DNA of 64,000 nt from IMGVR_UViG_3300044712_001937:124001-188000, one strand, 5' to 3'; shown: positions 13,439 to 29,997, counted from the first letter of the stretch. A program made the numbers and translations. The notes: generated by a model not told the origin, from the sequence alone.

Positions 13439-13526
13439 GTCGGGTTGCGTGAGTGGTCGAAACGGGGGTTCTGCAAAAGCTCTATTCCGAAAGGTACACA
13501 TTGGTTCAAATCCAATACCCGACTCA
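13439..13526 (+). tRNA. tRNA-Cys(GCA), long variable arm
   Basis: gtcgggt/acccgac acceptor, ct-gca-aa loop, U73. Confidence 0.85.
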
Positions 13527-13530
13527 ATAT

Positions 13531-13620
13531 TCTTGGGTTGCTTTAGTTGGTCGAAAAGTCCAGACTGTTAATCTGGTGAGATTTATCTCCATCATAGGTT
13601 CGAATCCTATCCCAAGAGCA
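13531..13620 (+). tRNA. tRNA-Asn(GTT), long variable arm
   Basis: tcttggg/cccaaga, ccaga-ctgttaa-tctgg, V-arm gagat-tt-atctc. Confidence 0.85.
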
Positions 13621-13687
13621 GTAATTTATTTATTAATATTTAGGTCGTTTGTTCGAATATAAAGTATTTATATTAAATATTTAATAT

Positions 13688-14272
13688 ATGAGTAATTTAA
13701 AAAATAATATCTTAAAATTAAGAGATGAAGGTAAAACATATAGTGAAATAAGTAAATTATTAAATTGTGCAAAAAGTACGATTTCTTATTATTGTAAATT
13801 ATATGGAAAATCAACTATTATTAGCAATAAAATAAATAATAGTGATATTTTATTATTTCAAGAGTTATATGATAATTATCATTCAGTTAATAAAGTTGCA
13901 TTTATTACAAATAGGTCTAAATCTACAATTTTAAAATATGTTAAAACTATAAAAAGAAATAAACAAACGTATGATGAAATAAAAAAAAATAACATTAAAT
14001 ATGTTAATAACTTTAGAAAAAGATTGAAAATAAAATCAGTTGATTATAAGGGCGGAAAATGTATTAAATGTGGTTATAATAAATGTATAGCAGCATTAGA
14101 ATTTCATCATAGAAATCCAAATAATAAAGATTTTGAAATTTCATCATCAAAAATTTTATCTTGGAATAAAATAAAAATTGAATTAGATAAATGTGATTTA
14201 GTTTGTAGTAATTGTCATAAAGAAATTCATTGGGATGTATCCCCTCTGCCTGATAAGCAGTTGGAAGGGTAA
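13688..14272 (+). CDS. HNH endonuclease with N-terminal HTH
   Basis: GGKCIKCGYNKC..ALEFHH...CSNCHKEIH. Confidence 0.85.
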   Translation: MSNLKNNILKLRDEGKTYSEISKLLNCAKSTISYYCKLYGKSTIISNKINNSDILLFQELYDNYHSVNKVAFITNRSKSTILKYVKTIKRNKQTYDEIKKNNIKYVNNFRKRLKIKSVDYKGGKCIKCGYNKCIAALEFHHRNPNNKDFEISSSKILSWNKIKIELDKCDLVCSNCHKEIHWDVSPLPDKQLEG

Positions 14273-14310
14273 TTTGGTTACATAAGGGTTCAATTCCCTT
14301 CTTCCCAACT
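14231..14310 (+). tRNA. Atypical tRNA-Ile(GAT)-like RNA lacking canonical D-arm
   Basis: tgggatg/cttccca acceptor; ctgc-ctgataa-gcag; T-arm aaggg-ttcaatt-ccctt; D-loop-like aatttggtta placed 3' of anticodon arm. Confidence 0.6.
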
Positions 14311-14317
14311 AAAATAT

Positions 14318-14402
14318 AGTGACGTGGATGAATGGTTTAGTCACCAGTCTGATACACTGGATTCTTAGGAATAATATGGGTTCGAATCCCATCGTCACTA
14401 CA
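14318..14402 (+). tRNA. tRNA-Ile(GAT), long variable arm
   Basis: agtgacg/cgtcact; ccagt-ctgatac-actgg; V-arm attc-ttag-gaat. Confidence 0.85.
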
Positions 14403-14457
14403 ATATTTAATAATAAATATTATGATATTAAATAAGTATTTATTATAAAATTTATTT

Positions 14458-14757
14458 ATGAAAAATATTAAATCAAAACAAAGACTATTTGAAGTTATTC
14501 AAAAAATAGATGACACTTATAAATCTAAAGAAATTCTTAATGAAACTAAAGCTTTTGGCAAATTAAGAAAATTAAATAAAAATTTATACGATGATACTAT
14601 TAATTTGGAAGAAAAAATTGGTGAAAATGTATTAAATTTAATTAAAGATTCTATTGAAAAAAATAATTTAAAATATAAAAATGATGAAGAACGTAAATTG
14701 GTATATCTTATAATTTTAGATTTGATTCTTAGTCGTTTTTTAGATAAAACAGAATAA
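14458..14757 (+). CDS. Hypothetical protein
   Basis: ORF after AGTATTTAT motif. Confidence 0.6.
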   Translation: MKNIKSKQRLFEVIQKIDDTYKSKEILNETKAFGKLRKLNKNLYDDTINLEEKIGENVLNLIKDSIEKNNLKYKNDEERKLVYLIILDLILSRFLDKTE

Positions 14758-14762
14758 CAATT

Positions 14763-14855
14763 GGAAAGTTACCCAAGTTGGTGAAGGGGACACACTGCTA
14801 ACGTGTTAGGTCATCTAATAAATGGCGCAAGAGTTCGAGTCTCTTACTTTCCGCA
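14763..14855 (+). tRNA. tRNA-Ser(GCT)
   Basis: Class II cloverleaf, ct-gct-aa, G73. Confidence 0.9.
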
Positions 14856-14919
14856 TTTGGTTTTTGGGTCTACTCCCGTGCTCAAGGATATCAAAAAATA
14901 TTTGTTAACGGGAGTCCTT

Positions 14920-15076
14920 GGAGAATTGGCAGAGTTGTTTAATGCGATGGTCTGGTTCAATATGATTGATTAAGGGTGAACTCCTTAGTCTTTTGCTCAT
15001 GAACGAAAACTATTGTTGCAAAGTAGAGAAGCAAATATTGAAAGCAACCAGAGGTTCGAAACCTTTATTCTCCACA
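14920..15076 (+). tRNA. tRNA-Ser(CGA or GGA)-like with 50-nt anticodon-loop insert
   Basis: ggagaat/attctcc, Ser-type D-arm, atggt-ct[insert]cgaaa-actat, enlarged V-arm. Confidence 0.65.
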
Positions 15077-15081
15077 AAAAT

Positions 15082-15170
15082 GGAAGATTGTCCGAGTGGT
15101 TTATGGAGGCGGTCTTGAAAACCGTTGTGCCCTAAAAAGCACCGTAGGTTCGAATCCTACATCTTCCGCA
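15082..15170 (+). tRNA. tRNA-Ser(TGA)
   Basis: Canonical class II cloverleaf. Confidence 0.93.
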
Positions 15171-15245
15171 ATAGAATCCCTTAAATAAGTAGTTGGTGTT
15201 GCCCCGTTACTGATGAGGATATTTGGGATAGTGTACGGGTTCTTT

Positions 15246-15330
15246 GGAAAGTAGCACTCAATGGTGAGTAACAAGGCTTGAACCCTTGGCTATCCTCCGG
15301 GGTAAGCGTTCGATTCGTTTACTTTCCGCA
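15246..15330 (+). tRNA. tRNA-Ser(TGA), 8/4 (allo-tRNA-like) fold
   Basis: ggaaagta/tactttcc 8-bp acceptor, agcg/cgtt 4-bp T-stem, caagg-cttgaac-ccttg. Confidence 0.75.
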
Positions 15331-15331
15331 C

Positions 15332-15577
15332 TTAAGTTGAATTTGCAGTTCAATTTAATATATGAATAGATAAGAACAATAGTATCTGCAAACTGCTATA
15401 AGTGTGTTTGTTCATATTGAATCCTTGCTTGCTTGGGACGCTGCTTCTAATGTTCAGTTGGGGTATTAAAATGCATCCGTGATTGACAACACGGAAACAA
15501 TAAAAATATCTTCCGAGACATTATCATGTTCGCAATAACATGTGGAATGCGTGAGTATAAGGCTCACACAAGGATTA
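15332..15577 (+). ncRNA. Unknown structured RNA(s) between tRNAs
   Basis: Two hairpins with complementary loops (tttgcag/ctgcaaa); multibranch domain closed by aatccttg/caaggatt. Confidence 0.5.
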
Positions 15578-15582
15578 AATCT

Positions 15583-15656
15583 GGTGACGTAGCTGAGTTG
15601 GTTTAGCGATGCCCTGAAAAGGCATAGAGGTCGGTTCGATTCCGACAGTCACCACA
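15583..15656 (+). tRNA. tRNA-Phe(GAA)
   Basis: atgcc-ctgaaaa-ggcat. Confidence 0.9.
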
Positions 15657-15818
15657 ATTAAAATCTGGTCACATAAGTGTATGTCCTAACCAGAAATACA
15701 TAACCTCATTAGCAGGGAGTATCTTAGTTTGGGCAACTAAGAATGTGAAAATAAAAATAGGTCGGGTTGCAGGTGGCGCAATTTGGCTAACTGTCTCACA
15801 AGGCATCCTATATAATAT

Positions 15819-15893
15819 GGAGATATAGCAAAGATGGTCTATGCAACGGACTGAAAATCCGAGGATACTGGCTCGATACCAGTTATCTCCACA
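15819..15893 (+). tRNA. tRNA-Phe(GAA), second copy
   Basis: cgga-ctgaaaa-tccg. Confidence 0.85.
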
Positions 15894-15902
15894 AAATAAT
15901 TT

Positions 15903-15976
15903 GCGAGTGTAGCACAACGGTTAGTGCGCCAGACTTCCAATCTGGGGATGTGGGTTCGATTCCCTTCACTCGCTCA
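15903..15976 (+). tRNA. tRNA-Gly(TCC)
   Basis: gcgagtg/cactcgc, ct-tcc-aa, U73. Confidence 0.92.
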
Positions 15977-15979
15977 TTT

Positions 15980-16053
15980 GAAGCTATAGTTTAATTGGAT
16001 AGAATGTCCCCAGCAAAGGGGTTGGTATAAGTTCGAGTCTTGTTGGCTTCACA
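15980..16053 (+). tRNA. tRNA-like RNA with aberrant anticodon loop
   Basis: Acceptor, D and T arms intact; cccc-agcaaa-gggg, no U33. Confidence 0.55.
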
Positions 16054-16103
16054 ATAGGTCTGAGGGAGTCCTTTGAAGGTATAAATAACCTGTCCCTCTC
16101 CAC

Positions 16104-16176
16104 GCAATAGTAGCATAGCGGTTAGTGTATCTGCCTACCACGCAGAATTTCGTGAGTTCGAGTCTCACCTATTGCT
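16104..16176 (+). tRNA. tRNA-Gly(ACC)
   Basis: gcaatag/ctattgc, tctgc-ct-acc-ac-gcaga, U73. Confidence 0.8.
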
Positions 16177-16225
16177 CTCGGTCGTTTTTTGTACTTCTCA
16201 GTATTTATATTGAAAAGTACAAATT

Positions 16226-16906
16226 ATGGCAAGAAAAGAAAAACAATACCATTTCATTTATAAAACTACTAATATTTTAACTGGTAAATATTATTATGGA
16301 ATGCATAGTGGCAATAATCTGGAGGATGGTTATTTAGGTTCAGGTAAAAGATTAAGACGTTCTATAAATAAATATGGCAAAGAAAACCATAAACGTGAAA
16401 TTATTGAATTTCTTCCGGATAGAAAATCTTTAATTGAACGTGAGAAAGAAATTGTTAATTTAAATGAAATTGCAAAAGTAGATTGCATGAATTTAGTTGT
16501 TGGTGGAAATGGTGGATTTAATGTAGAAATTGTGAAAAAGGGAAGATTAGCTGTTGATAATATTATGATAACAAGATATGGTATTAATTGGCGTTCTATT
16601 TTAGCTAAAAAAACTTTTAGTGATTTATCAATCAATAAACGTAATGAAATTAATAAAAAAATAATTGAAACCAATAAAAAAAATGGATTTACTTATGATA
16701 ATTTTAAAAATAAAAAGCATACCGAAGAAACAAGGAAAAAATTGAGTAAATCAAGAAAAGGAACAGGAATTGGTAATAAAAATTCACAATTTGATACATG
16801 TTGGATTACTAAAAATGGTATTAATAAAAAAATAAAAAAAGAAAATTTAATTTTATATTTAAAAGATAATTGGATTAAAGGTAGAAAATTAAAATGCATT
16901 CTATAG
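16226..16906 (+). CDS. GIY-YIG (Seg-like) homing endonuclease with NUMOD3
   Basis: FIYKTTN..TGKYYYGMH...YLGSG; KKHTEETRKKLS. Confidence 0.9.
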   Translation: MARKEKQYHFIYKTTNILTGKYYYGMHSGNNLEDGYLGSGKRLRRSINKYGKENHKREIIEFLPDRKSLIEREKEIVNLNEIAKVDCMNLVVGGNGGFNVEIVKKGRLAVDNIMITRYGINWRSILAKKTFSDLSINKRNEINKKIIETNKKNGFTYDNFKNKKHTEETRKKLSKSRKGTGIGNKNSQFDTCWITKNGINKKIKKENLILYLKDNWIKGRKLKCIL

Positions 16907-16970
16907 CTTAACTGGTAAAGCACATCCTTTGTAACGATGGGAAGCGGTTCGAGTCCGATAGAATGCTCTA
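16896..16970 (+). tRNA. Atypical tRNA-Thr(TGT)
   Basis: gcattcta/tagaatgc 8-bp acceptor; tt-tgt-aa loop with closing mismatch; weak T-stem. Confidence 0.55.
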
Positions 16971-17036
16971 AACTAATAGTTGATGCGAGATGGTGAGTGT
17001 ACATAAACACATGTGGTAAGATTATTAGTTTTATTT

Positions 17037-17109
17037 AGTGATGTGGCGCAATGGTTAGCGCAGGACTCTTATAAGGTCGAGGTTGGGGGTTCAAGTCCCT
17101 TCATCACTA
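17037..17109 (+). tRNA. tRNA-Ile(TAT)
   Basis: gact-ct-tat-aa-ggtc; A73. Confidence 0.85.
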
Positions 17110-17181
17110 CTAAATTTTTAAAATGTCTTTTATAATTGAAATAAAGATATTATTTTTGTTTAAATTAAAAATAAATGTATC

Positions 17182-17574
17182 ATGAGTATTCAGGAAAAAA
17201 TTAGGGAAGACATGGTTAATTCCATGAAGAACAAAGACTCTGAAAAGTTGAATTTGTTAAGAGTAGTTATTGGTGAATTTGGAAGAATTGGTAAAGAACT
17301 TTCAGATGAACAATCGGTAAAAGTTATTCAAAAAATGCATGAAAATGCAATTGAAATGAAAAACGATTATGAAATTAGTATACTTGAAGGTTATATTCCT
17401 AAAAAATTAGATGAATCTCAAATAAAAGAAATTGTAAAATCGATTATTGATTCAAATAATATTTCGAGTATTAAAGAAATGGGTAAAGTTATGGGTGAAT
17501 TAAAGAAACATCCTAATGTTGCTCAAATCGATAATAAAATAGCAAGTACTGTTATTAAAGAAATGTTGGCGTAA
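17182..17574 (+). CDS. yqeY: GatB/YqeY domain protein
   Basis: SIQEKIREDM..SMKNKD...YIPKKL...MGKVMG. Confidence 0.85.
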   Translation: MSIQEKIREDMVNSMKNKDSEKLNLLRVVIGEFGRIGKELSDEQSVKVIQKMHENAIEMKNDYEISILEGYIPKKLDESQIKEIVKSIIDSNNISSIKEMGKVMGELKKHPNVAQIDNKIASTVIKEMLA

Positions 17575-17588
17575 AGCCAACATTTTAT

Positions 17589-17663
17589 GCATCGGTAGCT
17601 CAGTGGTAGTAGCGTCTGCCTGTTAAGCAGAGGGTCGTAGGTTCAATCCCTACCCGGTGCGCA
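17589..17663 (+). tRNA. tRNA-Asn(GTT)
   Basis: tctgc-ctgttaa-gcaga; G73. Confidence 0.9.
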
Positions 17664-17700
17664 AATAAAAATTATAAGTATTTATAAGAAAATTTTTAAT

Positions 17701-17967
17701 ATGAGTAAAGTTGGTGATTTTTTAATTAATAGTTGGAATAGTTTTCCAAAAATTTATTTATATATTTTCTTAATAGCTATTATTGCTGGTTTAGCTGGTG
17801 GTATTGAAGTAGGTGGATATACAGTATTTATTTTAGGTGGTGCATTTATTGCATTTATTTGGCTTAGAATGATATGGAATTGGTTAGATAGTTGGTTGAA
17901 TTTAAGTTACAATTTAAAATTATTAGGATATTTGATTAAATCGTGGTTTACTAAAAATGAAAATTAA
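17701..17967 (+). CDS. Hypothetical 2-TM membrane protein
   Basis: Two hydrophobic helices. Confidence 0.6.
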   Translation: MSKVGDFLINSWNSFPKIYLYIFLIAIIAGLAGGIEVGGYTVFILGGAFIAFIWLRMIWNWLDSWLNLSYNLKLLGYLIKSWFTKNEN

Positions 17968-18487
17968 AAAAGTTATACATAAAAACGATAGAAGACCATT
18001 CCCTTATTTTGATTTCTTCATTCCTGTAATTATATTTCGAAATAAATCTTACTCAATTTCAAAATATTTTAAATTTGATTCTTCAACACTATACCATTTT
18101 GAAGATGAAGACCAATACGATATTAATAAATTAATGGGATTTAGTATTGGAATGCATCATAATAATTCGTTTAGATTTGGATGGAGACCTAATAAGGATT
18201 TAAGTAAAATGGAAATCGTAGGTTATGAATATTTAAATAAATTACGTATTCCTGAACTACCTATTTGTGAAGTTAAATTGGATAAATGGTATAAATTTGA
18301 ATTAAAATATATTGCAGAAACTGGTCAAATTGAGTATGTTGTAACAGATGGAAATGAAATTTTTAGTTGTAAACATCCTGCAACCAACATAAAAAGAAAA
18401 TTTAATCTTGGTTATAAATTATATCTTTACTTTGGTGGAAATAAAAAAGCACCTCATGATATGATTATTTATCAGGATAATGAATAA
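17957..18487 (+). CDS. Hypothetical phage protein
   Basis: DINKLMGFS..HHNNSFRFGWR...YFGGNKKAPHD; beta-rich. Confidence 0.7.
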   Translation: MKIKKVIHKNDRRPFPYFDFFIPVIIFRNKSYSISKYFKFDSSTLYHFEDEDQYDINKLMGFSIGMHHNNSFRFGWRPNKDLSKMEIVGYEYLNKLRIPELPICEVKLDKWYKFELKYIAETGQIEYVVTDGNEIFSCKHPATNIKRKFNLGYKLYLYFGGNKKAPHDMIIYQDNE

Positions 18488-18492
18488 TTGAT

Positions 18493-18568
18493 GCCGAAGT
18501 AGCTTTAATTGGTAGAGCACCTGACTTGTAATCAGGGGGTTGGGGGTTCGAGTCCCTTCTTCGGCTCA
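18493..18568 (+). tRNA. tRNA-Thr(TGT)
   Basis: cctga-cttgtaa-tcagg. Confidence 0.92.
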
Positions 18569-18600
18569 TAAAAATAATTTTATCAATAATACCAATATGA

Positions 18601-18834
18601 ATGACGGTGAAGAAAATAAACAGGGAAAAGTTAGCAACTTTATTTCTTTTTTTAGGAACATTTTTCAATCCTATGGGTTACGATGCAATACTAAAATATT
18701 TAATAGACAAGACCGGAAATTATTGGTATTCAATTTCTATTTTTTACCTATTATCAGTATTTTTCTTTATATTATATTTTGTATTTGCTAAAATAAATCC
18801 ATTAAATATTTTTAAATTTAATAAGAATAAATAA
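18601..18834 (+). CDS. Hypothetical membrane protein
   Basis: GTFFNPMGYDA; 2 TM helices. Confidence 0.6.
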   Translation: MTVKKINREKLATLFLFLGTFFNPMGYDAILKYLIDKTGNYWYSISIFYLLSVFFFILYFVFAKINPLNIFKFNKNK

Positions 18835-18872
18835 TAAAATATTAATAATTTGTTTTATATTTGTGATAACAT

Positions 18873-18947
18873 GTCTCCATAGCTCAACGGATAGAGCATT
18901 AGTCTTCTAAACTAAGGATTTGCGTTCGATTCGCAGTGGAGATACTA
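18873..18947 (+). tRNA. tRNA-Arg(TCT)
   Basis: ttagt-cttctaa-actaa. Confidence 0.9.
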
Positions 18948-18960
18948 ACAAAACTAAACT

Positions 18961-19080
18961 ATGACAGTTATTTGTCCCAAATGTAAACAAACAGTTTTTA
19001 TTTTTGAAAATAAAGATTATGTTATTTGTTGTGGAGAAGTAATCTTCGTAGTTAAAACGCTTCCATCGTCCAAGGGATAA
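18961..19080 (+). CDS. Small Zn-ribbon protein (39 aa, below ORF-track cutoff)
   Basis: MTVICPKCKQ...ICCGE. Confidence 0.5.
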   Translation: MTVICPKCKQTVFIFENKDYVICCGEVIFVVKTLPSSKG

Positions 19081-19132
19081 GGCATCGGTTTCCTAAACCG
19101 ATAATACAGGTTCGAGTCCTGTTGGGAGTACA
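19059..19132 (+). tRNA. tRNA-Arg(CCT)
   Basis: tcggt-ttcctaa-accga. Confidence 0.88.
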
Positions 19133-19160
19133 AAACTATTAACAAATAAAACCAAAAATT

Positions 19161-19358
19161 ATGCTTTATTGTAATTATTCTAATGAAATATCACGTGCTC
19201 GTAGGTTGATTAACATTTCAATCGATAGATTGATGTTTATAAAAAACAGATTTAGTGGTAATAACCAAAATCACAAGGATATTTTAGTTAAAACAGATAA
19301 ATTATTAGTTGAATATCAGGAATTGGATAAGGAGGTGAAAAAGCATGAATATCATTAG
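19161..19358 (+). CDS. Hypothetical protein
   Basis: ORF. Confidence 0.5.
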   Translation: MLYCNYSNEISRARRLINISIDRLMFIKNRFSGNNQNHKDILVKTDKLLVEYQELDKEVKKHEYH

Positions 19359-19623
19359 TATTGAGAATACAAAAAGATTTAATAGTTTTTCAAATAAAGT
19401 TGAAATATCTTCAAATTATAAATATAGTGATAATAAAAATTATTTACTTATACTTAATGATGATGATATTAACAATGATAATTGTATTATTAAATTAAGA
19501 GGATATTCTATATCTTGTTTATTGATTCCAAAAAGATATCGTTTTACTTTTTTTGATGAAACACCTATTGGTAAAATAATAAGACGTAATTTAACTGAAG
19601 ATTTTTCAATAAGCTATTACTAA
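19345..19623 (+). CDS. Hypothetical protein
   Basis: ORF. Confidence 0.5.
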   Translation: MNIISIENTKRFNSFSNKVEISSNYKYSDNKNYLLILNDDDINNDNCIIKLRGYSISCLLIPKRYRFTFFDETPIGKIIRRNLTEDFSISYY

Positions 19624-19633
19624 TAGCTTATTT

Positions 19634-19707
19634 GCTCCTGTAGTTCAATGGATAGAATGCTTGGTTTCGACCCAAATGATGCGAGTTCAAGTCTTGTCGG
19701 GAGTACT
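19634..19707 (+). tRNA. tRNA-Arg(TCG)
   Basis: ttgg-tttcgac-ccaa. Confidence 0.85.
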
Positions 19708-19721
19708 AAAAAAAAAGAATT

Positions 19722-19880
19722 ATGGCAACAAAAATAAGAGAAACTCCAATTTTATATGGAAAAGATGCTAAAAGATTTCTTGAAGCAATTGCTAATCCTA
19801 AAAAAATTTCAAAAGAAGAATTGGAGAGAATTAAAAAAAATTACGAAGAAATAAAAGGTATATCTAAAGGTATATTTTAA
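19722..19880 (+). CDS. Small protein resembling antitoxins of GNAT-toxin pairs
   Basis: MATKIRETPILYGKDAKRFLEAIANPKK (52 aa; not in ORF track). Confidence 0.55.
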   Translation: MATKIRETPILYGKDAKRFLEAIANPKKISKEELERIKKNYEEIKGISKGIF

Positions 19881-19883
19881 TAT

Positions 19884-19962
19884 GCATCTGTAGCTCAATT
19901 GGATTAGAGCACCTGTCTACGAAACAGGAGGTTTAAGGGTTCGAATCCCTTCAGATGTACTA
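19884..19962 (+). tRNA. tRNA-Arg(ACG)
   Basis: cctgt-ctacgaa-acagg. Confidence 0.92.
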
Positions 19963-20030
19963 ATTTTAATTAAAATATGAAGAGAACTAATACATCGTAA
20001 ATCAGGTTTCTTACAACTGATTTATGAATT

Positions 20031-20228
20031 ATGGAAAATTCCAATTTAAGTAAGAACCCGACCAAATATTGGTTGGTTGAACTCACGCTTACGAGTGGTG
20101 AAGTTCTCGAATTTTATGTTAAAGCTAAAACACAATTTGATGCTTATGAAAAAGCTGAAGAATATATGTTTTGGCTCGATAACAAAAAATTAAAAAATAA
20201 ATTAAAAGAGTTTAGGCTTATGCCTTAA
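20031..20228 (+). CDS. Hypothetical protein
   Basis: ORF. Confidence 0.55.
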   Translation: MENSNLSKNPTKYWLVELTLTSGEVLEFYVKAKTQFDAYEKAEEYMFWLDNKKLKNKLKEFRLMP

Positions 20229-20269
20229 AAAATGAGTTTTGATGGTATCTCGCCATGAAAAACCATTAC

Positions 20270-20326
20270 ATACGGGATGTAGATATTGGTGAACTGAAAC
20301 ATCTAAGTAATCAACGAGTCCCGTAT
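20270..20326 (+). ncRNA. Hairpin presenting a 23S rRNA helix-11 sequence
   Basis: GAACTGAAACATCTAAGTA (20291-20309) inside atacgggat/gtcccgtat stem. Confidence 0.65.
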
Positions 20327-20330
20327 TAAT

Positions 20331-20404
20331 GTGGGTAACGCATAAATGGTGGTGCACCAGCTTGCCATGCTGGAATAGAGTCGGTTCAATTCCGATTACC
20401 CACT
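20331..20404 (+). tRNA. tRNA-Gly(GCC)
   Basis: ccagc-ttgccat-gctgg; U73. Confidence 0.85.
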
Positions 20405-20462
20405 CTACATTTCGAAAATATTTTTTAGCTTTTTATAGTATTTATATGAAAAATATAATACT

Positions 20463-24035: not shown

Positions 24036-24111
24036 GGCTCTATAGCTCAATTGGTCAGAGTGACAGTCTCTAAAACTGGAGGTTATGGGTTCGAACCCCA
24101 TTAGAGCCACA
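24036..24111 (+). tRNA. Amber suppressor tRNA (anticodon CTA)
   Basis: ggctcta/tagagcc; cagt-ct-cta-aa-actg; canonical D and T arms; A73. Confidence 0.9.
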
Positions 24112-27600: not shown

Positions 27601-27787
27601 ATTTATGGTAAATTTATTATAAATACTTATTTAACTTTGTTTTAAATTCTAATAGTATGAAAATTATAATTTATGTTATAAAACATATAAATTTATTTGT
27701 TTTATAAAAAAAGAATGTGCAAATTTGTAGCTCAATAGTATTTATACTTTTAAAAGTATTTTAATAAATTAATTTAAATTAAAAGTC

Positions 27788-28117
27788 ATGAAATAGGTAA
27801 AATTAGTAACAGTAACTCGAAAAGACTTAAACGCAGGGTATCAAGTTGCCCAAAGTATTCATGCTGCAACTACATTTGCAGTTAAATTTCCAAACCATTT
27901 CCTAAATTGGTTTGAATCTTCAAATTACGTCATATCGTTATCAGCCGATAACGAAGAACATCTCAAAAACATATATAATAAATTAGTTTCTAATGGAGCT
28001 AATGTTGTGGCATTTACTGAACCAGACATTAACGACCAATTAACATCTATTTGTTTTTATGGAACTCCGGAGATGCGTAAATTAACTCAAAATTTAGATT
28101 TAACACTTAAGAATTAA
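27788..28117 (+). CDS. pth2: Peptidyl-tRNA hydrolase (Pth2/PTRHD1-like) with in-frame TAG at codon 3
   Basis: ATG AAA TAG then VKLVTVTRKDLNAGYQVAQSIHAA...NYVISLS..NEEHL...FTEPDINDQLTSIC; next in-frame ATG is near the C-terminus. Confidence 0.8.
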
Positions 28118-28409: not shown

Positions 28410-28763
28410 ATGTACAGAATTACATATGAACAGGGTAATGGCTATCGTTGTGGCTGTTGCAGAAGAACAAGTGTTGAGACTATTGATTTAGTATCTGAAG
28501 AAGAAGTTTTTGATTGGATTGAAGAACTTCATGCATCATTTAAATTTCCAAATTGGGAAGATGAAGATGACCGAGAATTATTGTCTATTGAAAGAGAAAT
28601 TGGTGTTGATATTTCAGACCAATTTACCCCAAGACCTGATAAACTTGAAGCAAAAATTGCTGAAAGAAAAAATAAAATTGATGATAATAATAAAAAACGT
28701 GAATATGAAAATCGTCAATTAGAATATAAATTATATTTAGATTTAAAAAACAAATTTAATTAA
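28410..28763 (+). CDS. Hypothetical protein
   Basis: GYRCGCCR motif. Confidence 0.65.
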   Translation: MYRITYEQGNGYRCGCCRRTSVETIDLVSEEEVFDWIEELHASFKFPNWEDEDDRELLSIEREIGVDISDQFTPRPDKLEAKIAERKNKIDDNNKKREYENRQLEYKLYLDLKNKFN

Positions 28764-28765
28764 CT

Positions 28766-28801
28766 ATGAAAGATACATAGATACACTCCAGACCACCATA
28801 A
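28766..28801 (+). other. Amber-interrupted mini-ORF MKDT*IHSRPP* (putative regulatory leader)
   Basis: ATG AAA GAT ACA TAG ATA CAC TCC AGA CCA CCA TAA. Confidence 0.55.
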
Positions 28802-28863
28802 TAATATTCATAAGTAAGGTATCTTTTTTCATAACATAAGTATTTATATCAAAATTAATACTT

Positions 28864-29625
28864 ATGATAAATAAATTAAATTTAAAAGAAGGTGCTTATT
28901 ACATTGGTACATGTAGAAATACTAATATTGCTAAATGGTTTAATGGTAAATTTGTTTTTATTAATAGAAATTTTAATGAATTGTATGTAGAAACAATACC
29001 ATATTTCGGAGATGTAAAAAAAGAAAATAGTGATGGATTTATTCCCATTGAAGAAATAAAAATAAATTTTGATAATATTAGTGAAGAGAAGAATATTCAA
29101 GATTATAAAAATTATGCAAGAAAAATATATCTTAATTTATCTTCTGAAGATTTAACTAATGAAATTTGGAAAGAAATCCCAAATTATGAAGGTTTATATT
29201 ACGTTTCCAATTTAGGCAGAATAAAAAAATATGACAATAATAAAATAATGAGACAAAATTTTTGTCGAGAATATTTAGTTGTTGGATTAACTGATTATAA
29301 TCGCAAACGTAACACATGCAGGGTACATAGATTAGTTGCATTAACATTTAAAAAAAATAATGATGATACATTAGAAGTAAATCATATTAACGGAATAAAA
29401 ACTGATAATAGAGAAATTAATTTAGAATGGATTAGTCATTCAGAAAATTCTAAACATACTTATATTTCAGGAAATAAAATAAAAAAATTAACTCCTGAAA
29501 TGGTCGTAGATATTAAAAAAATGTTAAATAAAGGAGAAATCCAAAAAAATATTGCAAAAAAATATAATGTAGCTTGTAGTACAATATGTGAAATAAATAA
29601 AAATAAAAAATGGACAAATATTTAA
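28864..29625 (+). CDS. NUMOD4-HNH homing endonuclease with N-terminal extension
   Basis: EIWKEIPNYEGLYYVSNLGRI; VHRLVA; VNHINGIKTDN...NLEW. Confidence 0.9.
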   Translation: MINKLNLKEGAYYIGTCRNTNIAKWFNGKFVFINRNFNELYVETIPYFGDVKKENSDGFIPIEEIKINFDNISEEKNIQDYKNYARKIYLNLSSEDLTNEIWKEIPNYEGLYYVSNLGRIKKYDNNKIMRQNFCREYLVVGLTDYNRKRNTCRVHRLVALTFKKNNDDTLEVNHINGIKTDNREINLEWISHSENSKHTYISGNKIKKLTPEMVVDIKKMLNKGEIQKNIAKKYNVACSTICEINKNKKWTNI

Positions 29626-29641
29626 ATAAATATACAATATT

Positions 29642-29965
29642 ATGGAAACAACAATAAATTTCGATATCATAAAAATTAAAGAAGATATCAAGAAAATGGT
29701 AGAATTACAAAAATTTTATAAAAATCAGAGAAAAACTGAAAAAATAATTGGTGAAAGAAAAATATCAGCAGATGAAGCTGCATATAAACATAAATCAAAT
29801 CGTGGTGATTTACGAGTAATGTATGCAGTATATGGTTTAGCTAAAGGTAAATGTTTTTCTCAAATTGAAAATCATTATCCGGAAGATAAACATCCGCTTA
29901 AAGATTATCAAAATTCTATTGATAGAAAATTAGAAAAATACATGATTGAAGTAGAAGTATCATAA
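29642..29965 (+). CDS. Conserved-looking phage protein
   Basis: LRVMYAVYGLAKGKCFSQIE motif. Confidence 0.7.
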   Translation: METTINFDIIKIKEDIKKMVELQKFYKNQRKTEKIIGERKISADEAAYKHKSNRGDLRVMYAVYGLAKGKCFSQIENHYPEDKHPLKDYQNSIDRKLEKYMIEVEVS

Positions 29966-29969
29966 AATA

Positions 29970-29997
29970 AGAAGGGAGTACAAACTCCCTTTTTTTA
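29970..29997 (+). terminator. Intrinsic terminator
   Basis: aagggagt-acaa-actccctt plus U-tract. Confidence 0.85.

Follow-up and report, generated by a model that had tools for sequence, protein, structure and literature searches.

Short upstream reading frames that control a downstream gene through the ribosome translating them are well described. In leader-peptide translational attenuation (ermC/ermB, cat/cmlA, SecM-secA, MifM-yidC2), a ribosome held at a defined codon melts an RNA helix that sequesters the initiation region of the next gene, the trigger being a drug or a secretion defect. RAPP-like arrest peptides (ApdA, ApdP and the RAGP of SecM; PMC10951233, PMC12992588) halt the ribosome at a C-terminal R-A/G-P-P, with the last Pro as A-site Pro-tRNA, and are encoded upstream of protein-localisation genes, usually with a signal or membrane segment. 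TnaC, the leader of the tna operon, arrests at its stop codon with peptidyl-tRNA(Pro) in the P site, senses free tryptophan and controls Rho-dependent termination, while the leaders of amino-acid operons (trp, his) read out the availability of one particular charged tRNA through stalling at a hungry sense codon. Two further systems involve an internal stop codon: an engineered switch with amber codons in a tna or trp leader, which is transcriptional (rut masking) and driven by an orthogonal tRNA and an unnatural amino acid (reviewed in PMC6412442, section 6 and Fig. 8), and eukaryotic AMD1, where only ribosomes that read through a stop reach an arrest site at the next in-frame stop (PMC13025110). 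In phages, stop-codon recoding (code 15 and similar; bioRxiv 10.1101/2021.08.26.457843) combines low G+C content, rare TAG stops, a phage-encoded tRNA(CUA) and in-frame TAGs proposed to regulate translation.

Here we describe an 11-codon mini-ORF, interrupted by an in-frame stop codon, that is conserved in giant phages and that we interpret as a leader peptide gated by the phage's own suppressor tRNA. It differs from the erm/cat/SecM/MifM attenuators in its proposed trigger, which is whether an early stop codon is decoded by a phage suppressor tRNA, in its masking strand, which is the leader's own stop codon region, and in having only 11 codons. It shares with the RAPP-like peptides an Arg two residues before a P-site Pro at the very C-terminus, but the A site would hold a stop codon and release factor, the usual middle residue is Pro rather than Ala or Gly, the peptide is much shorter and the neighbours are not Sec/YidC genes. 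TnaC has no internal stop. In the trp and his leaders it is a sense codon that stalls the ribosome, while here the alternative to decoding is termination and the tRNA is supplied by the phage. Unlike the engineered switch, the present one is natural and apparently translational, and in AMD1 readthrough has no dedicated suppressor tRNA, the tail is long and the upstream main ORF is affected.

A conserved mini-ORF with an in-frame stop

The analysed stretch, called the window below, comprises 64,000 nt (bases 124001-188000) of IMGVR_UViG_3300044712_001937, a complete virus record of 364,702 bp with direct terminal repeats and 26% G+C, representing a jumbo phage assembled from rhizosphere or wetland metagenomes. 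The genome has 49 tRNA genes, 22 of them in the window, where a dense array of 20 tRNA genes lies within 7 kb (13439-20405) and includes duplicated Phe, Cys, Ser, Thr, Asn and Gly genes and four Arg isoacceptors. The features of the locus are collected in Table 1. The original prediction, which described the mini-ORF as a readthrough sensor with a stall motif behind its amber codon, was confirmed as to position and sequence, as was the other early amber codon in the same operon, that of pth2 (ATG AAA TAG), where the Pfam PTH2 match begins at the first residue after the TAG.

Table 1. Features of the leader locus, numbered from the first base of the window
Position	Strand	Feature	Remarks
24036-24110	+	Phage-encoded amber suppressor tRNA, anticodon CUA	Proposed input of the switch; found by ARAGORN; best tRNA match in the window in Rfam (70.1 bits)
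27737-27745	+	Promoter-like motif AGTATTTAT upstream of pth2	Inferred start of the operon; the same motif precedes pth2 in relatives
27788-28117	+	pth2 (peptidyl-tRNA hydrolase 2)	In-frame amber as codon 3 (27794-27796)
28410-28763		117-aa ORF	Precedes the 100-nt gap that holds the leader
28766-28801	+	Leader mini-ORF, MKDT-amber-IHSRPP-stop
28778-28780	+	Amber gate, codon 5 of the leader
28790-28801	+	Arg-Pro-Pro-stop	Proposed slow-termination (arrest) site
28796-28808	+	Last codon, stop and following bases	5' strand of the ancestral anti-start helix; in this genome only CCAUAAUA still matches
28809-28866	+	HNH-cassette leader region (fold z = -3.3)	Two copies of CATAAGTA (28809-28816, 28835-28842) complementary to the HNH start region (28857-28866); GGTATCTTTTTTCATA segment (28818-28833) complementary to the leader's own start; promoter-like AGTATTTAT (28839-28847)
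28864-29625	+	NUMOD4-HNH homing endonuclease gene (Pfam)	Inserted between the leader and its target; absent at this place in most relatives
29638-29645	+	UAUUAUGG at the start of gene 29642	Complementary to the leader's CCAUAAUA; homologous position paired in relatives
29642-29965	+	107-aa protein of unknown function	Ancestral regulated gene; synteny in more than 60 loci
29969-29994	+	Intrinsic-terminator-like hairpin ending the operon	An equivalent GC hairpin with a T run follows the homologue in a relative (L001)

The mini-ORF is more than a chance occurrence. The whole genome holds only one ORF of the form ATG-x(1-8)-TAG-x(1-8)-R-[PA]-P-stop, and two Arg-Pro-Pro-stop strings in all, against about 0.9 expected from base composition. 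When relatives were collected with the flanking proteins and with DNA patterns (IMG/VR and metagenome contigs of up to 363 kb, with 107-aa proteins 51-75% identical to that of the window), every locus with enough upstream DNA was found to carry the mini-ORF, in 54 distinct nucleotide versions. The consensus is M-[KR]-[DEHN]-[TKL]-stop-[IVFM]-x-x-R-P-P-stop, and nearly all versions have 11 codons, with rare 9-10-codon forms and ends of R-A-P, R-S-P, R-D-P or K-P-P. Among 53 aligned versions, the in-frame stop is TAG in 49 and TAA in 3, and the end is R-P-P-stop in 48 and R-A-P, R-S-P or R-D-P followed by stop in the rest. Arg9 is invariant as an amino acid but is encoded by AGA (38), CGA (14) and CGT (1), Pro10 uses all four codons, and Pro11 and the terminal TAA never change. 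Although Pro11 (CCA in 45 of 53) and the TAA are also constrained by an RNA helix (see below), so that only Arg9 and Pro10 are clean evidence for selection on the end of the peptide, the part after the in-frame stop is under selection as a peptide, which means that ribosomes must read the stop. ARAGORN and Rfam identified no tRNA fragment, attachment site or known RNA family at the site.

The gene in front of the leader varies, being pth2 in about half of the loci and one of three other small gene families elsewhere, with a spacing of -4 to +42 nt, while the gene behind it is constant, a homologue of 29642 about 120-250 nt downstream, or further where an HNH gene is inserted. As was originally predicted, the NUMOD4-HNH gene is a secondary insertion that separates the leader from 29642. 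Related genes (window 28864-29625; L002 9290-10078; L005 801-1574; L013 2687-3439, the L numbers denoting loci of relatives) lie immediately after the leader in three lineages (window, L005 type, L011 type) and immediately before it in another (L002 type), and the flanks of the leader look like a hot spot for this homing endonuclease. In the L002 type the HNH frame runs into the leader and ends on its TAG, and suppression would extend the endonuclease by seven residues. The function of the 107-aa protein remains unassigned, as Pfam, PHROGs, PADLOC, a PDB profile search and the ESM Atlas gave nothing usable and tblastn against GenBank phages found no match.

Stop codons and suppressor tRNA anticodons

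Every related locus with a few kilobases of flank carries a suppressor tRNA, which had not been noted in the original prediction. In all amber-type loci the anticodon is CUA and both pth2 and the leader carry TAG, whereas in L076 and L107 the anticodon is UUA, pth2 starts ATG AAG TAA and the in-frame stop of the leader is TAA. These two UUA tRNAs share acceptor and T arms with the commonest CUA type, so the change is C34 to U34 in an orthologous gene. A short contig, L069, also has a TAA leader, but its tRNA is off the contig. An early TAG (TAA in the ochre genomes) lies directly before the conserved N-terminus in all 24 loci where pth2 precedes the leader. It should be noted that in the ochre-type genomes of this first clade the terminal stop of the leader is also TAA and so is suppressible too.

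A second clade, reached from the pth2 of the 735-kb phage LR756501.1 (L110), has the same module with different sequences. Here pth2 has an early stop, a mini-ORF preceded by a Shine-Dalgarno sequence lies downstream of it (for example M-S-stop-S-R-P-P-stop or M-K-stop-T-C-K-P-P-stop), and a gene beginning MET follows, and then the suppressor tRNA(s); hhalign showed no homology between the downstream genes of the two clades. In one of these genomes, L125, the tRNA is UUA and both gates are TAA. The match between anticodon and stop codon at two separate sites, seen in at least two independent lineages, is the strongest evidence that the suppressor tRNA decodes these stops. In each of five genomes of this clade (L110, L117, L118, L123, L125) the first nine bases of the leader equal the first nine bases of that genome's pth2 (for example ATGTCGTAG or ATGACGTAA) and change together between genomes, while the pth2 of L124 begins M-K-D-T-stop-I, like the leader of the window clade, suggesting that the leader arose from, or exchanges with, the 5' end of pth2.

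The anticodon appears to be what is conserved, not the tRNA body. Suppressor tRNAs of relatives fall into several unrelated sequence types with different discriminator bases, and some relatives carry two unrelated tRNA(CUA) genes side by side (L033 1404-1823, L035 1451-1870). The nearest paralogues of the tRNA(CUA) of the window are Arg(ACG) at 73% and Lys(CUU) at 71%; the amino acid carried by the suppressor is unresolved.

Genome-wide reassignment of TAG, as in code 15, can be rejected in spite of the matching tRNA. Treating TAG as sense adds little ORF length, TAG ends 34 of 609 long ORFs, pth2 is the only long gene with an early in-frame TAG, and the only 3 TAG-joined ORF pairs are adjacent genes or junk frames. 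Only two conserved in-frame TAGs were found in 365 kb, both within the first five codons.

A stop at codon 2-4 of pth2 also occurs in the uncultured huge phages LR756504.1, LR745206.1 and LR756501.1 and in cultured Tenacibaculum phage pT24 (LC168164.1) and Yersinia phage fHe-Yen9-03 (LT960552.1). A tRNA(CUA) was found in three of these five genomes (pT24, fHe-Yen9-03, LR756501.1), with none within the 6.3-kb loci of LR756504.1 and LR745206.1, the only parts of those two genomes searched. The pth2 of LR756501.1, and of L117, has a second in-frame TAG at codon 37 (L110 3094-3096); that phage may use TAG as a sense codon more widely. No leader was found near the pth2 of the Yersinia phage, and Arg-Pro-Pro-stop strings elsewhere in LR745206.1 (L112 and L114) are not gated leaders. 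Mycobacteriophage pth genes have an ordinary annotated GTG start, which in Myrna and IkeLoa is directly preceded in frame by GTG TAG or ATG TAG. Myrna showed no CUA tRNA. The preceding stop may be coincidence or a start-stop element.

A helix between the leader end and the downstream start codon

An additional feature emerged when the leader-to-gene regions of HNH-free relatives were folded, as the same long-range helix was obtained each time. The last codon of the leader, its stop and the next seven bases (CCA UAA UAGUGUG) pair with the bases just before and including the downstream start (CACAUUAUU AUG G). In a fixed, ungapped register, 50 of 61 sequences have 10-15 contiguous pairs, with a mean duplex energy of -13.7 kcal/mol against -3.3 for shuffled partners. 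Over 46 distinct rows, twelve positions are paired in 76-100% of rows and seven show compensatory double changes (at one position the pairs are G-C 24, U-A 6 and A-U 5). Slid registers pair far less, and none of 1000 partner shuffles reached the observed pairing. In the second clade, three of five genomes (L118, L123, L125) hide the downstream AUG with a different sequence placed 0-6 nt after the leader stop, while L110 and L117 show no such helix.

Of several possible explanations for these observations, we favour a suppression-gated translational attenuator, and consider this reading likely. Ribosomes would start at the leader ATG, which often lies just after, or overlaps, the stop of the preceding gene, and meet the in-frame stop at codon 5, where without suppression they are released and nothing else happens. 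With the suppressor tRNA they would translate six more codons and reach Arg-Pro-Pro-stop, where termination is expected to be slow. From the known extent of the bacterial ribosome on mRNA we infer that a ribosome with Pro11 in the P site and UAA in the A site covers about +1 to +13, which is the paired strand, whereas one halted at the gate ends short of it; holding the helix open would allow the 107-aa gene to be translated. Comparison shows that the stop is decoded, that the peptide end is selected and that the helix exists and covaries, but the pause and the direction of the effect are inferred. R-P-P-stop is not the canonical RAPP motif, and the inference of a pause rests on published work in other bacteria, where C-terminal poly-Pro lowers termination efficiency the most in E. 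coli (PMC6412442) and R-A/G-P-P motifs arrest ribosomes (PMC10951233, PMC12992588). Only DNA runs from rhizosphere and wetland metagenomes hold the sequence, and there are no transcript, ribosome-profiling or proteomic data. The lack of Shine-Dalgarno sequences, the TTTG-type promoter elements and the Tenacibaculum relative suggest, by inference only, a host among the Bacteroidota.

In the window itself the transcription unit appears to run from the promoter-like AGTATTTAT before pth2 to the terminator, in the order pth2, a 94-aa ORF, the 117-aa ORF, the leader, the HNH gene and the 107-aa gene. The motif is a candidate phage promoter element, with 14 copies between 13028 and 41506 (for example at 27619 on the minus strand) against 3.7 expected in the window, oriented with the genes and often about 10 nt after TTTG or TTGT. 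The HNH cassette has replaced the hairpins HP1 and HP2 found in relatives (see below) and has brought its own promoter-like motif, a hairpin over its own start codon and the segment GGTATCTTTTTTCATA, which is complementary to the start of the leader (TATGAAAGATAC, 28765-28777). Related versions of this segment occur in the L005 and L011 cassettes, and it could shut off leader translation or be a remnant of the insertion event; the hairpin it forms is absent in HNH-free relatives, and a scan found no terminator there. Only the 8 complementary bases of CCAUAAUA and UAUUAUGG remain, 840 nt apart (-8.4 kcal/mol), although the leader is intact in all three HNH-invaded lineages. In the L005 type the HNH start region imitates the original start and can pair with the leader end at -8.7 kcal/mol, about half the ancestral strength. 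In the window, control may have been kept, weakened or transferred to the HNH gene.

An output at the level of transcription, as with TnaC, is a possible but unlikely alternative, in which the paused ribosome would block Rho or alter a terminator/antiterminator formed by HP1 and HP2. These two conserved hairpins lie inside the loop closed by the long helix (alignment columns 55-129), HP1 being built on two to four tandem TTGCGAA/TTCGCAA heptamers and HP2 being a near-palindrome (TTGA..TCAC...GTGA..TCAA) almost invariant in sequence. They are 97% paired, with four pairs showing compensatory changes and G.U as the commonest state at several positions, and some relatives carry an additional GC-rich hairpin before the gene; the engineered amber switch also works in this way (PMC6412442). 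However, the trailing U's of HP2 are paired within an extended stem, leaving no free U-tract, both hairpins are missing in several relatives that keep the leader and the anti-start helix, and that helix has the stronger covariation. The two outputs are not mutually exclusive, and the hairpins may stabilise the closed state, add a transcriptional layer or be protein-binding sites.

It is somewhat less probable still that the paused ribosome acts backwards, as in AMD1 (PMC13025110), with ribosomes that pass the gate queueing into and throttling pth2 or whichever gene lies upstream, a negative feedback on suppression-dependent expression. The leader ATG lies -4 to +5 nt from the upstream stop in many loci, and an 11-codon ORF would put the AUG one ribosome footprint behind the terminal P site. 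Against this, the spacing and identity of the upstream gene vary, and it is the distance and base-pairing to the downstream gene that are conserved.

We regard as improbable that the product matters rather than the act of translation, either as a peptide acting in trans or as a short peptidyl-tRNA(Pro) that drops off and serves as a substrate or signal for Pth2 (the generation of peptidyl-tRNA for Pth2 was suggested as an alternative in the original prediction). The leader is co-located with pth2, and codons 2-4 and 6-8 show moderate amino-acid conservation, but residues 3, 4, 6, 7 and 8 vary widely, the length drops to 7-9 codons in some lineages and the covarying helix is left unexplained. 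The peptidyl-tRNA alternative gained no support. That the ORF is incidental, a by-product of a DNA or RNA signal (a homing-endonuclease target, a promoter or only the anti-start strand) or of chance, is very improbable, since, although HNH genes flank it in several lineages and its last 6 bases and the following 7 are constrained by pairing, the ATG is invariant, the length is fixed, the codon changes at Arg9 and Pro10 lie outside the helix, the stop type switches with the anticodon in three genomes, a Shine-Dalgarno sequence is present in the second clade and the pattern occurs once per genome.

Suppressor tRNAs in phages with the standard code

What suppressor tRNAs do in phages that keep the standard code is unresolved. 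The authors of jumbo phage XacN1 looked behind terminal ambers and could not find targets for their tRNA(CUA) (PMC5852040), and in the literature searched we found no link between phage suppressor tRNAs and pth2 or a leader peptide. The present results provide candidate answers, as they name two conserved targets and indicate that the place to look is the 5' ends of genes. Such genes are being missed by annotation, the deposited pth2 CDS of Tenacibaculum phage pT24 starting at an internal ATG and the gene of Yersinia phage fHe-Yen9-03 being unannotated. Leader-peptide attenuators are known and an engineered amber version exists, but a natural one driven by a phage suppressor tRNA appears to be new, and would add a stop codon versus a suppressor tRNA to the inputs of this family. 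The repeated link between suppressor tRNA and peptidyl-tRNA hydrolase calls for a functional explanation.

More broadly, and with a probability that we judge only slightly better than even, suppressor tRNAs carried by standard-code jumbo and huge phages may be regulatory molecules with dedicated targets, namely stop-codon gates placed in the first two to five codons of pth2 (seen here in at least five distant lineages) and of an arrest-type leader peptide (two clades). Together these would form a natural amber- or ochre-switch regulon that couples expression to suppressor activity, and that may be the seed from which full stop-codon reassignment evolves.
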